In this document: one piece after another, positions 12,058-17,376 of the stretch
How the letters are laid out: every line of letters begins with the position of its first letter
Numbering within the stretch: position 1 is the first letter of the stretch
From: Histomonas meleagridis 2922-C6/04-290x
Lineage: Eukaryota > Protista > Parabasalia
Assembly: GCA_020184695.1 (NCBI GenBank)
Contig: JAANOX010000021.1
Coordinates: forward strand, 1-64,000
Reading direction: 5' to 3'
Length of the DNA stretch: 64,000 nucleotides
The notes under the pieces: generated by a model
Told to the model about the DNA's origin: nothing
What the model saw: the letters and a program-made list of their open reading frames with translations, nothing else
Database searches by the model: none
Made by a program: the position numbers and the translations under genes

Positions 12058-13330
12058 GGGGGTGGAAAAAGTCTTTGCGCGAGCTTTTTTTTATGTAATG
12101 AAGTTATTTAATAAGAAATTGAAATATATTATTAAATAGTACATGTTCTAAATGAATTATCTTTTAAAATAAAACTAAGGCATTTTATTTACTAGTTCAA
12201 AATTCATACAACAAAAGTGGATTGTCAGAAAAAACGTTAAACATTTTCAATGAATGAAACTCAGGTTGAAATCCGCGCAGTTATCAACTTCCTTTGGAAG
12301 AAAGGATTAGATAATTCTATCATATATAGTGAGTTGCTTGATGTATATAAAAATGATGCACCCGCATTAAGAACTATTCAAGATAGAACAAAAAAGTTAC
12401 GAGAAGGAACATGTACGATTTTTGATCTTCCCAGAAAAGGAAGACCAGAAAGAACCGATTTAGAGCCAAAAATCAGAAATTTTTTAACGTCAAACCCTTA
12501 TGCAAGTACCAAAAAAATTGCTAAAATTACAAATGCTGATATAAAAACTGTGAAAAATATTTTAATAAACAAATTACAAATGAGGAAGGTAAATTTCAAA
12601 TGGGTACCACATTTACTTACTGAAGAAATTAAGGCAAAAAGGGTGCATATTGCAAAGGAATTATTAGAATTTTTAACAACTGCAAACGAGCGAAAGATAA
12701 GGATGATTCTTACACAAGATGAAACATGGGTATACTTTGTAAACCCTAGAAATACAATGTGGTTAGAATCGGGGCAGCCTTGTCCGCAAAAAGTCAAACA
12801 AACTATTGGAGCGAAAAAAGCAATGATATCTGTTATTTGGGGAATAACAGGTATTAAATCAATTACAATGCTTCCGCTCGATAGAAAATTTAATAGGGAG
12901 TTTTTTGCGGAAGTTGTTCTTGAAGATTTAGCTCAAAAATCAAAACAAAAGGATACTTTTTTTACATTTAGATAATGCAAGACCACATTTGGTTGCTCAA
13001 AAAATTCAATGATTTAGGCATAAAAAGACTTGATCATCCTCCGTACTCACCGGATCTAGCTCCTTCGGACTCTCTCTTTGGGTATGTTAAAAAAAGTTAC
13101 TAGAAGGATGTGAATTTCAGGATGAAAATGAACTTTTTGGAAAAAAAGTGACTGAATTGCTATACAATATACCAAAAGATATATTTAAATCCGTGTATAA
13201 TGAATGGATGAACCGACTTTTCATGGTAATTTAAAACCAAGGGGAGTACATTAATTAGCAATAATTAAAAAAATATTTACTTAATTATTTTGAATAAAAA
13301 AATTCGCACGCAAAGACTTTTTCCACCCCC
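12058..13330 (+). mobile_element. Mariner (DD34D-type) transposon, 1273 bp
   Basis: 22-bp perfect TIRs gggggtggaaaaagtctttgcg (12058-12079, 13309-13330), flanked by TA (in fact TATA) on both sides. Confidence 0.95.
12250..13258 (+). pseudogene. Mariner transposase, frameshifted after ~codon 238
   Basis: HTH N-terminus, WVPHLL, TQDETW, then in shifted frames HLDNARPH and HPPYSPDLAPSD. Confidence 0.92.
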
Positions 13331-14830: not shown

Positions 14831-14895
14831 CTCCGTTACCACTTTTTATTGGTGTTACACATTTGAAGACAGGGAGAAAAATTAAAAAAAAATCT

Positions 14896-14967
14896 TTCCG
14901 ATACGGGGAGTCGAACCCCGCTCCCGTGGATGAAAACCACATATCCTAACCGATGAACGATATCGGA
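14896..14967 (-). tRNA. tRNA-Glu (anticodon TTC)
   Basis: 72 nt TCCGATA...TATCGGA-A acceptor stem, D arm with GGTTAGGA, anticodon loop TTTTCAT, T arm GGTTCGACTCC; T-run Pol III terminator at ~14883-14892. Confidence 0.95.
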
Positions 14968-15182
14968 ATTCAATTTTAAAAATTTTAATAATTTGTAATA
15001 TATTAGTATACTACACAAAATTTAACCTCAACCGCTTCACAACACTTATAAAGAATTAATGCATTGGTTTGATGATGCTATAAAACAACTCTACCCTTCT
15101 GCAATTTCACAGATTAAATACACGGTAGTTTTAAACATTTCAAATTAAATTTTTTTAGTCAATAGGGACCTTTTTCATGAAT

Positions 15183-15923
15183 TTATTGCTGGCTTGAAAT
15201 TTTATCCAGAAGGGCCATACAAAGATCTGTGCTTGTTTTCGTAGCAACTTCCAAAAGGTTTTCAAAGTCAACTGTGTTATCCTTTTTTTCAATAGCGATG
15301 TCACTAAAAGATCTTATTGACAAGACAGGCTTATTAAATTTAGTACATATTTGGGCAATTGAAGTTCCCTCCATTTCAACGCATGCGACATCGCTGAACA
15401 ATTCTTTGATTTTTTGAACTTGCTCATCAGTTCTTATAAACGAATCAGATGAACCCAAAAGCCCGTAATGAACTTTCGTTGGAATCTTTGATTCACTTTC
15501 TAATTCTTTTATCATTTGAATTAATTCTTTTGATACATTATTATATCTTGGTTGATCATAAGGAACTTGACCAGGAAGAAATCCAAAATTTGTTGCATCC
15601 ACATCCGTGTAAATAAATTCTTCTGCAATGAACAAATCAAGAAGTTTTTGTCCTTCTTTAAATCCACCTGCAACTCCTACATTAATAATAATATCCGGGT
15701 CGTATTTCATAATCATTACAGTTGTTGTAAGTGCTGAATTAACTTTTCCAACTCCGCTTAATGTAATGATCAGTTCCAAATTTGAATATTGAACAATATA
15801 AAATTTTTTTCCATATATTTCTTCTACTTTTGTTTGTTCTTTTGTGAACCTTTTGACAAGCTCGTCTAACTCATAAGTCATGGCTTCAATAAAACCTATT
15901 CTCTTTGCAATCATTTTATTCAT
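15183..15923 (-). CDS. mtnN: Bacterial-type 5'-methylthioadenosine/S-adenosylhomocysteine nucleosidase
   Basis: AMxxE (catalytic Glu), SGVGKVNSA, INVGVAGG, CVEMEG and RSFSD all retained; 246 aa, intact. Confidence 0.92.
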   Translation of the reverse strand: MNKMIAKRIGFIEAMTYELDELVKRFTKEQTKVEEIYGKKFYIVQYSNLELIITLSGVGKVNSALTTTVMIMKYDPDIIINVGVAGGFKEGQKLLDLFIAEEFIYTDVDATNFGFLPGQVPYDQPRYNNVSKELIQMIKELESESKIPTKVHYGLLGSSDSFIRTDEQVQKIKELFSDVACVEMEGTSIAQICTKFNKPVLSIRSFSDIAIEKKDNTVDFENLLEVATKTSTDLCMALLDKISSQQ

Positions 15924-16182
15924 TTATCGACCGAGGGTGCCCCAATTTTACGATTTAAGAATTTTTAAACGTACAATGATTTTTTATTTTGAAATTTTAT
16001 GGAGGACTAATTAAATTTATTAAATTTCGAATGATGAATATTGTGCCTTTGGTTTTTGCTGTTAGATGATACTAATGATTTTTTTATAACTATTTATCCT
16101 TTCATTAAACATCTTGCACAAAATAAATTCAATCGAATATGATCGATATGTTTCAATAGTTTACAGAAGGAACAAACCGAAT

Positions 16183-17376
16183 ATGAGCGAAAGGTGTCGA
16201 AAACGAAAACCTGTTGCTTATTATGATTCATCAAGTGATGAAAGTTTTGAAGATACTGACGATAGTGATTTTGAAGACTCGGAAGAATTAGAATCTTATA
16301 GTAAAAGATCAAATTCTAAGAAAAAACAGGAAAAGCGAACTCGACGCAAAGAAAGGTCCACAAAATTATACAATAAAAAGAAAAATAAAAGGAAGACTCC
16401 TTTTGTTGGAAGCCTTTCCATTGATGTTAATCCCAAATCTTTTAATGATTATTCTTCCAATGATTTAAATCATGATCCTGCAGGTAATCCATGTCGTTTT
16501 GTTCCATACAGCAAGATTAAAGATAACATTCTTAATCCTGAGAAGTATATGAAACCTGGTGAAAAAGGTGTTCTTACATTTATTCCAAATTGGAATCCCA
16601 ACAACTCCGACCATCTCTCACAATTCGGTTACAAACAAGAACTTGCTAAAACAGATCATACATATCTCACCCAATTAACACTTAGGCAACTTGAAGACCT
16701 CCTCGAAAAAACCGAGCAAGAAATTCAAAGTCTTCCTCTTCCAAAAGAAAACACCACGGTTGCCATTCCAGGCTTTTCCACTACCCTCGAAGACTCAATC
16801 GCCATTAACGCAGACGTTCGCGACTTTGATTGGGCCGAACTTGGCAGACACCAAAAGTTTGATGTCATCACAATGGACCCACCCTGGCCCATTGCCACCT
16901 CCAATGTTACTCGCGGTGTTAATATTCCATATGAACAACTTGACGCAAGTATTATTGCGCAAATGCCTCTTCATTATGTACAGGATCGAGGCTATTTGTT
17001 CATGTGGGTCATTGCATCGCAACTAACGAATGGTGTTACGATGCTTAAACATTGGGGATATCAAGTTGTTGGACATATTAATTGGGTAAAGATATCAAAG
17101 TATGGAAGATATATGCCATCGCATGGTTATTATTTTCAACATAATAAGGAAACTTTGCTGATCGGCCTGAAAGGTGAACCACCAAGCGAAATGAATCGCG
17201 ATAAGTTCCAAAGTTTGCTGGTGAATCAAAGAGGAATTAGACAAAGTCAGAAACCCGATTCGTTGTATGAAATGATCGAAGAAATATTCCCGGGACTAAT
17301 GTACCTCGAAGTGTTCGCAAGACCTCATAACCTGAGAAATGGTTGGGTGTCAATAGGAATAGAATTACCGACGTAA
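16183..17376 (+). CDS. MT-A70 family N6-adenine methyltransferase, AMT1/MTA1-type
   Basis: FDVITMDPPW, TRGVNIPYEQL, NWVK, HGYYFQHNKETLLIGLKG, QSQKP, YLEVFARPHNL..WVSIG.EL. First ATG at 16183 (the ORF track starts at a TTG); acidic/basic NLS-like N-terminus. Confidence 0.9.
   Translation: MSERCRKRKPVAYYDSSSDESFEDTDDSDFEDSEELESYSKRSNSKKKQEKRTRRKERSTKLYNKKKNKRKTPFVGSLSIDVNPKSFNDYSSNDLNHDPAGNPCRFVPYSKIKDNILNPEKYMKPGEKGVLTFIPNWNPNNSDHLSQFGYKQELAKTDHTYLTQLTLRQLEDLLEKTEQEIQSLPLPKENTTVAIPGFSTTLEDSIAINADVRDFDWAELGRHQKFDVITMDPPWPIATSNVTRGVNIPYEQLDASIIAQMPLHYVQDRGYLFMWVIASQLTNGVTMLKHWGYQVVGHINWVKISKYGRYMPSHGYYFQHNKETLLIGLKGEPPSEMNRDKFQSLLVNQRGIRQSQKPDSLYEMIEEIFPGLMYLEVFARPHNLRNGWVSIGIELPT

Follow-up and report, generated by a model that had tools for sequence, protein, structure and literature searches.

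Two genes of Histomonas meleagridis, one encoding an MT-A70 methyltransferase and one encoding a bacterial-type 5'-methylthioadenosine/S-adenosylhomocysteine (MTA/SAH) nucleosidase, stand head to head, and this locus raises the question of whether the pair forms a module, in which a writer of N6-methyladenine (6mA) in DNA is coupled to the clearance of its product, or whether two independent genes merely happen to be neighbours. The locus (Table 1) lies in a stretch of 64,000 nucleotides, here called the window, and the genome searched was the assembly of the attenuated strain (43,133,364 b, 281 contigs; PMC8529796). Very probably, chance placed head to head two housekeeping genes that function independently of each other; within this reading we infer what the substrates are, where the proteins reside and that the genes are regulated independently. 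Both gene types, the AMT1-type MT-A70 and the bacterial-type MTA/SAH nucleosidase, are already known.

Table 1. Features of the divergent locus, with positions given in window coordinates
Feature	Start	End	Strand	Basis
MtnN/Pfs-type 5'-methylthioadenosine/S-adenosylhomocysteine nucleosidase gene	15183	15923	-	intact ORF, 246 aa, PF01048
AT-rich spacer between both start codons, 259 bp	15924	16182	.	sequence
AMT1/MTA1-clade MT-A70 methyltransferase gene	16183	17376	+	intact ORF, 397 aa, PF05063, DPPW

The initial annotation of this DNA described an intact divergent pair with about 260 bp between the start codons, and this description is accurate, as both open reading frames (ORFs) are present at the positions of Table 1, intact without recourse to splicing, and the ATG-to-ATG gap is 259 bp. 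It also cautioned that chance divergent pairs are common in compact protist genomes, which holds in the window: among ORFs of at least 150 aa, 6 of the 25 junctions are divergent, where random orientation would give 25%, and every junction type includes spacings of 200–500 bp. The head-to-head layout is no more than chance gives. The spacer of the pair is the shortest of the divergent spacers in the window, and shared regulatory DNA is therefore physically possible.

Synteny across parabasalids had been proposed as the key test of a module, and the pair was absent from all of the loci compared, comprising six on the MT-A70 side (Tritrichomonas musculus, T. foetus and Trichomonas vaginalis, and the parabasalid-like eukaryotes P0005, P0020 and P0009, including loci L020 and L025) and four on the nucleosidase side (P0054, at locus L007, and P0058, P0061 and P0064, all eukaryote-like contigs). 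The closest named relative, Dientamoeba fragilis, was not recognised among these loci. For T. musculus, T. foetus and T. vaginalis, the 17-kb locus of each MT-A70 orthologue contained neither a gene of the PNP_UDP_1 family nor a six-frame match to the nucleosidase, and there was likewise no nucleosidase near the orthologues at P0005, L020 and L025. Next to the nucleosidase relatives P0054, P0058, P0061 and P0064, other neighbours were present and no MT-A70 was found, for P0061 and P0064 also in six-frame searches. The divergently oriented 375-aa neighbour at L007 was considered as a diverged MT-A70 and ruled out (BLASTP E=3.5); a weak match to RRM makes it RRM-like. No microsynteny of any kind was found between the window and the loci of the relatives, and the absence of the pair in these relatives is therefore weak evidence against a coupling specific to Histomonas. 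Additionally, both genes have second copies in the same genome. The second MT-A70 gene, on contig C159, has no PNP_UDP_1 member nearby, and the second nucleosidase copy, on contig C85, is frameshifted, 95% identical, unpaired and located behind an Arf gene. The C85 copy has only positions 15046-15917 of the window in common with the locus, and when we tested whether C85 is the ancestral location of the nucleosidase, the neighbours of the L007 gene had no matches near C85 or in the window.

The metabolic setting was assessed across the whole genome, which encodes an intact SAH hydrolase (ahcY; 486 aa, 608.9 bits vs a cut-off of 497.6). The LuxS profile PF02664 had no match in the 43-Mb genome and was positive in five control genomes. 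With SAH hydrolase present and LuxS absent, the Pfs-LuxS route for SAH is incomplete in Histomonas, and the premise that the nucleosidase replaces SAH hydrolase does not hold for this organism. Given the intact ahcY, there is no functional need for the nucleosidase as the sole SAH-clearing enzyme. Some share of the nucleosidase in SAH clearance is conceivable and may exist, because bacterial MtnN enzymes generally hydrolyse SAH (EC 3.2.2.9); this activity is not universal among plant homologues. The genome further contains a gene of the spermidine-synthase family and at least seven radical-SAM genes, from which we infer the supply of the ordinary substrates of the nucleosidase. No other PNP_UDP_1 member of the genome reaches the cut-off for MTAP, and apparently no recognisable MTA-cleaving enzyme besides the nucleosidase is encoded.

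Under chance adjacency, the methyltransferase, a group-A parabasalid AMT1-type MT-A70, would most likely be the catalytic subunit responsible for N6-methyladenine in nuclear DNA, in line with what is published on Trichomonas vaginalis, and the basic runs in its N-terminal region would be its probable nuclear localisation signal. The nucleosidase, a prokaryote-derived MtnN/Pfs enzyme that is carried also by several parabasalid-like lineages, is most likely cytosolic, since it has no targeting extension. It most likely cleaves 5'-methylthioadenosine that arises in spermidine synthesis and 5'-deoxyadenosine left by radical-SAM enzymes, yielding adenine for salvage. The SAH formed by methyltransferases, including the one in the window, would most likely be removed by the SAH hydrolase that the organism itself encodes.

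The initial annotation had instead favoured a co-regulated module of writer and product-clearing enzyme, for which we found no support, as the pair is non-syntenic in the relatives examined and ahcY is intact. A version of this idea specific to the Histomonas lineage is unlikely. Here the spacer would be a bidirectional promoter, the nucleosidase would rise together with the 6mA writer, and SAH would be removed irreversibly, close to methylation in both time and space. The head-to-head arrangement with its short spacer, the presence of contigs for both genes in each of three probable RNA runs, the retained catalytic positions of the nucleosidase and the usual acceptance of SAH by MtnN-family enzymes (established knowledge, EC 3.2.2.9) are all consistent with it, but the pair is conserved in none of about ten loci of relatives, SAH hydrolase is intact, no LuxS is present for the use of S-ribosylhomocysteine, the second copies of both genes are unpaired and such spacing is nothing unusual in this genome. 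Further, the word depths of the contigs (53/10.4, 47.8/32.2 and 42.6/15.8 for the two genes) do not move together over the three runs, a poor measure with n=3. We regard as very unlikely the more specific scenario in which, in Histomonas alone, a rearrangement put the only intact MtnN gene beside the group-A AMT1 gene, so that the 259-bp spacer drives both and an irreversible SAH sink supplements the reversible SAH hydrolase. The recruitment of SAH hydrolase to methyltransferases is a familiar concept for animals and plants, and local product clearance for SAM-dependent methylation is the same idea as in the proposed module. However, that recruitment rests on the physical association of proteins, whereas the Histomonas pair is a matter of gene adjacency only, involves a different enzyme and is not conserved.

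The identity of the methyltransferase was examined separately. The protein has 397 aa counted from the first in-frame ATG at 16183, and the alignment of the T. vaginalis orthologue starts at this first residue. The PF05063 match covers residues 226-393 (111 bits, 6.6e-32), the catalytic DPPW motif is intact within ITMDPPWPI of the translation, and the N-terminal region is basic, acidic and Ser-rich with NLS-like runs. The best solved relative is Tetrahymena MTA1 (7yi8_B; 2.1e-44, 155 bits), with an alignment over residues 135-395 (261 residues) that takes in sequence N-terminal of the Pfam domain. METTL3 follows with 99.7 bits (1.7e-27), METTL14 reaches 48 bits, and no METTL4 chain was found at E<=0.001 among the solved-structure matches. 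The fungal and ciliate matches are of the MTA1 type. The orthologue tree puts the window gene into a clade of 26 (97*) that also contains T. foetus P0011 and T. musculus P0006. Next to this clade, still within the parabasalid clade (98*), stands the P0030 group of T. vaginalis, which by this placement is probably a co-orthologue. Across the whole genome there are two MT-A70 matches, the window gene and the C159 copy, both AMT1-like and both with DPPW. In T. vaginalis, four AMT1 paralogues have been described together with ApT 6mA, and AMT6/7, p1 and p2 are absent (PMC12695648).

Based on these comparisons, the enzyme is AMT1/MTA1-like and predicted to be of the DNA 6mA type, closest to ciliate MTA1/AMT1, which agrees with the initial annotation given the ranking of MTA1 over METTL3 and METTL14 and the placement in the 98* clade with the T. 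vaginalis AMT1 genes. The AMT1 assignment draws on the solved-structure scores, the parabasalid tree and the published classification of the T. vaginalis genes. That the gene instead encodes an mRNA m6A methyltransferase (IME4/METTL3-like), which would leave the pair unconnected with DNA 6mA, we consider highly improbable. Source names of relatives include 'mRNA m(6)A methyltransferase' and 'N6-adenosine-specific RNA methylase IME4', and METTL3 is the second-best solved relative. These database names, however, look like automatic, family-level labels, and several lines argue against an RNA substrate, including the clear lead of Tetrahymena MTA1 over METTL3 along an alignment that extends beyond the N-terminal edge of the Pfam domain, the MTA1-type matches in fungi and ciliates, the published phylogeny that assigns the T. 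vaginalis paralogues to AMT1, and the ApT 6mA found in this species (PMC12695648). The window gene has the MT-A70 domain and DPPW in common with the ciliate enzyme (AMT1/MTA1; Tetrahymena MTA1c, 7yi8/7f4l), and its N-terminal region is basic. It is orthologous to the T. foetus and T. musculus genes and probably to one of the T. vaginalis genes, of which four AMT1 paralogues are published (PMC12695648). In contrast to the situation of ciliate MTA1c, no more than two MT-A70 genes are seen in the Histomonas genome, each of them AMT1-like, which matches the published case of T. vaginalis, where AMT6/7, p1 and p2 are missing. Partner subunit and sequence preference may therefore differ from those in ciliates.

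The nucleosidase was likewise correctly recognised as a bacterial-type MTA/SAH nucleosidase. It matches PF01048 (PNP_UDP_1; 143.6 bits, 8.1e-42) and lies above the cut-offs of the NCBIfam MtnN equivalogs NF004079 (203 bits, cut-off 169) and TIGR01704 (160.3 bits, cut-off 73.8), and its nearest named relatives are bacterial. Among solved structures, it matches the S. aureus MTA/SAH nucleosidase best (3bl6; 1.6e-41), and in this alignment E18 corresponds to the third Glu of AMEEE, VEMEG to VEMEA and RSFSD to RAVSD. The catalytic acid/base residues of the E. coli enzyme are Glu12, Glu174 and Asp197, and the alignment indicates that the catalytic Glu/Glu/Asp positions are kept. Translation may start at the second ATG, at 15914, as in the paralogue, instead of at 15923. 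The protein aligns over its full length with bacterial MtnN/Pfs (EC 3.2.2.9; S. aureus 3bl6, E. coli 1jys), has the catalytic Glu, EME and SD conserved and is likewise about 240 aa long with a single domain; unlike its bacterial counterparts, it is encoded in a eukaryotic nucleus, in an organism with SAH hydrolase and without LuxS.

Kin of the nucleosidase gene in eukaryote-like contigs are 40-59% identical (P0054 at 59%), no orthologue annotated in T. vaginalis, T. foetus or T. musculus is among the best 120 matches, and nothing specific was found in the literature on this nucleosidase in Trichomonas, Tritrichomonas or Histomonas. Since it groups at this level of identity with genes in other eukaryote-like contigs, the acquisition is regarded as old. 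Naming a donor was attempted and given up, because the quick tree is an open polytomy with interleaved eukaryote-context and bacterial groups and many long branches. Bacterial contamination, or a very recent transfer set beside the MT-A70 gene by adjoining mobile DNA, is already largely refuted and has next to no probability, for although the MtnN family is bacterial in NCBIfam and the left flank abounds in mobile-element remnants (a mariner-type transposase at 12250-12975; also a tRNA-Glu at 14895-14968), the gene sits within a 159-kb eukaryotic contig with eukaryotic genes on either side, has a GC content (0.29-0.33) similar to the surroundings, has the 95% identical paralogue elsewhere in the genome, groups with genes of other eukaryote-like contigs and is represented by gene-sized contigs in probable RNA runs. 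In other anaerobic metamonads (Giardia, retortamonads), comparable bacterial-type nucleosidases serve Met/SAM-related salvage in gut protists, and S-adenosylhomocysteine nucleosidase belongs to retortamonad Met salvage (PMC7985675).

With two independent genes side by side as the preferred reading, H. meleagridis joins the parabasalids that have AMT1-type 6mA writers without AMT6/7, as already published for Trichomonas, and it has SAH hydrolase and a bacterial-type MTA/SAH nucleosidase together. To our knowledge, the bird host has no counterpart of the nucleosidase, and for this reason, and as apparently the sole recognisable MTA-cleaving enzyme, the nucleosidase is an ordinary candidate drug target. 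The same kind of nucleosidase is a drug-target candidate in Giardia and Entamoeba. A conserved pair would have represented a rare eukaryotic genomic coupling of a methyltransferase with product clearance; the evidence points elsewhere, and the pair as found matters little.

Contigs for each of the two genes came from three runs guessed to be RNA, which give neither expression levels nor start sites. The nucleosidase is represented by a gene-sized contig at 15067-15909 in all three, and the MT-A70 gene by contigs at 16198-17396/17610 and from 16174. Each gene has its own contigs in the three runs, and these leave the spacer open, with none over 15918-16173. The contig ends at 15909/15917 lie where both nucleosidase paralogues diverge, and they were rejected as a transcript end and taken as a graph branch point instead. 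The spacer itself holds initiator-like TCAYW motifs, seen by eye and unscored.

The AMT1/MTA1-like MT-A70 methyltransferase gene and the MtnN/Pfs-type MTA/SAH nucleosidase gene of the window are most probably chance neighbours, the one coding for an AMT1-type DNA adenine methyltransferase and the other for an enzyme clearing MTA and 5'-deoxyadenosine. The initial annotation had regarded them as a co-regulated module of a 6mA writer and a product-clearing enzyme, a reading that is not supported, as the pair is absent from the relatives' loci and the genome holds an intact SAH hydrolase. The arrangement itself was correctly described: both ORFs are intact and diverge, with 259 bp between their ATGs (the annotation had given ~260 bp). 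Among ORFs of at least 150 aa within the window, the divergent orientation is found in 6 of 25 junctions, and junctions of all orientations include spacings of 200-500 bp. Given ~11,000 genes, of which by our own estimate ~1% code for SAM-dependent methyltransferases, and a few SAM-cycle genes, we put the probability that a genome contains one or more such suggestive pairs by chance at roughly 10-20%. The published genome of the attenuated H. meleagridis strain has 43,133,364 bases in 281 contigs, 28.8% GC and 11,137 genes (PMC8529796, Table 1). The flanks include a tRNA-Glu gene 215 bp past the stop codon of the nucleosidase, a 241-aa ORF to the left of the nucleosidase with weak matches to mariner/Mos1-type transposases (PF01359 and PF17906) and, directly downstream of MT-A70, two ORFs that match no Pfam family and no gene in the loci of other parabasalids' MT-A70 orthologues.

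Features of the window (contig C21) and of related Histomonas contigs; L numbers give the same positions in the extracted loci
Feature	Position	Strand	Description
241-aa ORF	C21:12250-12975	+	left of nucleosidase
tRNA-Glu (TTC)	C21:14895-14968	-	
Nucleosidase	C21:15183-15923	-	intact, 246 aa
MT-A70	C21:16183-17376	+	397 aa from first in-frame ATG
789-aa ORF	C21:17852-20221	+	downstream of MT-A70
765-aa ORF	C21:20604-22901	+	downstream of MT-A70
Second nucleosidase copy	C85:412484-413219 (L012:7985-8720)	-	DNA 95% identical to window 15046-15917 only
Arf GTPase ORF	C85:413303-413854		
Second MT-A70	C159:189400-190617 (L013:7900-9117)	-	group B
757-aa ORF	C153:816226-818496 (L022:1727-3997)	+	N-terminal purine nucleoside phosphorylase

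Linkage of the two genes in parabasalids, as a conserved module would have it, was absent from all relatives' loci examined, both on the MT-A70 and on the nucleosidase side. In the 17-kb MT-A70 loci of Tritrichomonas musculus (L001-L003), T. foetus (L004) and Trichomonas vaginalis (L005 and L006), no PNP_UDP_1 member was present among the called genes, and a six-frame search of these species' loci gave no match to the nucleosidase. In three further lineages, the divergent neighbour of MT-A70 is an aldo-keto reductase (relative P0005) or, at a distance of just 148 bp, a gene of more than 507 aa without nucleosidase match (L025), or the upstream gene is co-oriented (L020). On the nucleosidase side, the divergent neighbour of the nearest relative, P0054 (locus L007), is a 375-aa protein that was considered as an MT-A70 and rejected as unrelated and RRM-like. 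The relative P0058 lies beside an 838-aa gene and a RabGAP, P0061 has a co-oriented upstream gene of 471 aa, P0064 has other neighbours that are not MT-A70, and six-frame searches found no MT-A70 in those nucleosidase-relative loci for which DNA was available. The same three samples yielded both P0058 and P0005, on separate contigs with different neighbours.

Microsynteny is generally decayed at these distances: when L001 and L004-L007 were compared with the whole 64-kb window, none of the ~30 neighbour genes matched, the two query genes apart. The relatives' loci therefore rule out a conserved pair but not one specific to Histomonas, and a co-regulated pair of the latter kind, although compatible with this decay, seems to us very unlikely. 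The Histomonas genome has two MT-A70 genes, on C21 and C159, and six PNP_UDP_1 matches, none of them on C159. On C85 lies a second nucleosidase copy, which corresponds to the coding sequence from about the second ATG together with 137 bp of 3' flank and takes in neither the spacer nor MT-A70. This copy follows an Arf GTPase ORF at a distance of 90 nt and carries a 1-bp insertion shifting the frame near residue 206, which could be either real or an assembly error.

The stretch was found in five sequencing runs, as contigs only and presumed to be RNA, and four of these were compared with the window. In three runs, all from one study, a contig spans 15067 to 15909 or 15917 and another 16198 to between 17386 and 17610, while the contigs of a run from a second study start at 16174; positions 15918-16173 lie under no contig in the four runs. 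The identical gene-sized pieces that recur in three runs are explained most simply as transcripts, in which case both genes would be expressed, each as an RNA of its own. The end at 15909/15917 is where the two nucleosidase paralogues diverge, and one contig enters the C85 flank there, so it reflects a branch point of the assembly rather than a start site. Contig depths, a poor measure of expression, do not track each other between nucleosidase and MT-A70. The contig that enters the C85 flank, 1450 nt long and from run X3, matches the window nucleosidase with 2 differences and continues past 15917 as the reverse complement of the 5' flank of the C85 copy; either it is a paralogue assembly chimera, or that run includes sequence from the C85 locus as well.

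The label "DNA 6mA-type" for the methyltransferase is supported both by its best structural match and by the publication of its T. vaginalis relatives as AMT1 (PMC12695648). The MT-A70 domain covers residues 226-393 (Pfam, 6.6e-32) with an intact DPPW motif, and the top match among solved structures is to the Tetrahymena MTA1 (AMT1) chains (155 bits, 2.1e-44, residues 135-395), part of a DNA 6mA methyltransferase complex, compared with 99.7 bits for METTL3, 48 bits for METTL14 and no METTL4 chain passing E 0.001 among all solved structures. The N-terminal 130 residues hold many acidic, Ser and Lys/Arg runs, of which RKRKP and KKKNKRK resemble nuclear localisation signals. The nearest named relatives, in T. 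musculus (61%), T. foetus (57%) and T. vaginalis (50%), fit a tritrichomonad-related parabasalid, and the database names "mRNA m(6)A methyltransferase" and "IME4" appear to have been assigned automatically at family level. In the tree, all parabasalid sequences fall into a single clade (98), within which two paralogue groups are conserved: A, uniting the window gene with T. musculus P0006 and T. foetus P0011 (97), and B, with the C159 copy, T. foetus P0039, T. musculus P0043 and P0045, and T. vaginalis P0047. The T. vaginalis P0030 set adjoins group A inside this clade and is probably its co-orthologue. Both groups are common to Histomonas, Tritrichomonas and Trichomonas, and the DPPW motif is present in each of the two Histomonas genes. 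AMT1-type genes in parabasalids are already described: in T. vaginalis, ApT 6mA extends across gene bodies, and there are four AMT1 paralogues but no AMT6/7, p1 or p2 (PMC12695648, 2025). A heterodimer of group A and B paralogues could substitute for the missing AMT1-AMT6/7 pair.

The identification of the MTA/SAH nucleosidase was confirmed by scores above both NCBIfam equivalog cut-offs (NF004079, 203 bits vs 169; TIGR01704, 160.3 vs 73.8). It matches PNP_UDP_1 along its whole length (Pfam, 8.1e-42), and its closest solved structure is the Staphylococcus aureus enzyme 3bl6 (1.6e-41), against which E18, VEMEG and an SD motif align to what we take to be the catalytic Glu/Glu/Asp positions of the family. 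The nearest relatives share 40-59% identity, and the four that were looked up sit in eukaryote-like contigs, surrounded by, for instance, SKIP/SNW, Myb, poly(A) polymerase, RabGAP, clathrin adaptor, WD40 and E2F genes. Bacterial relatives come next: P0067, which adjoins TatA/TatC and SpoIIE, and then named MAG proteins. In a quick tree, the Histomonas protein groups with P0054, P0055 and P0062, nested in a group (98) that mixes eukaryote-context and bacterial sequences in an open polytomy. We read the gene as a probable old prokaryote-derived acquisition common to several parabasalid-like lineages, for which the tree names no donor. Its distribution may be patchy, because no annotated T. vaginalis, T. 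foetus or T. musculus protein is among the best 120 matches. Neither gene type is new to metamonads; bacterial-type SAH/MTA nucleosidases, for example, are known from retortamonad Met salvage (PMC7985675).

The proposal that this nucleosidase replaces the reversible SAH hydrolase is contradicted by an intact adenosylhomocysteinase in the genome (486 aa; 608.9 bits vs an equivalog cut-off of 497.6). LuxS, needed by bacteria to regain homocysteine from the nucleosidase product, was not found in the Histomonas genome by a search that was positive in five control genomes. Bacterial activated methyl cycles are of two types, Pfs plus LuxS or SahH, and the Histomonas gene content points to the SahH type, in which the nucleosidase would remove MTA and 5'-deoxyadenosine and salvage adenine; activity on SAH too is possible. 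A spermidine-synthase family gene (220 bits) is a source of MTA and at least seven radical-SAM genes are sources of 5'-deoxyadenosine, and none of the other PNP_UDP_1 members of the genome reaches an MTAP cut-off. Additionally, a 757-aa ORF on C153 has a trimeric-type purine nucleoside phosphorylase as its N-terminal part (NF006054, 300.8 bits), and its remaining ~480 residues may represent a fusion.
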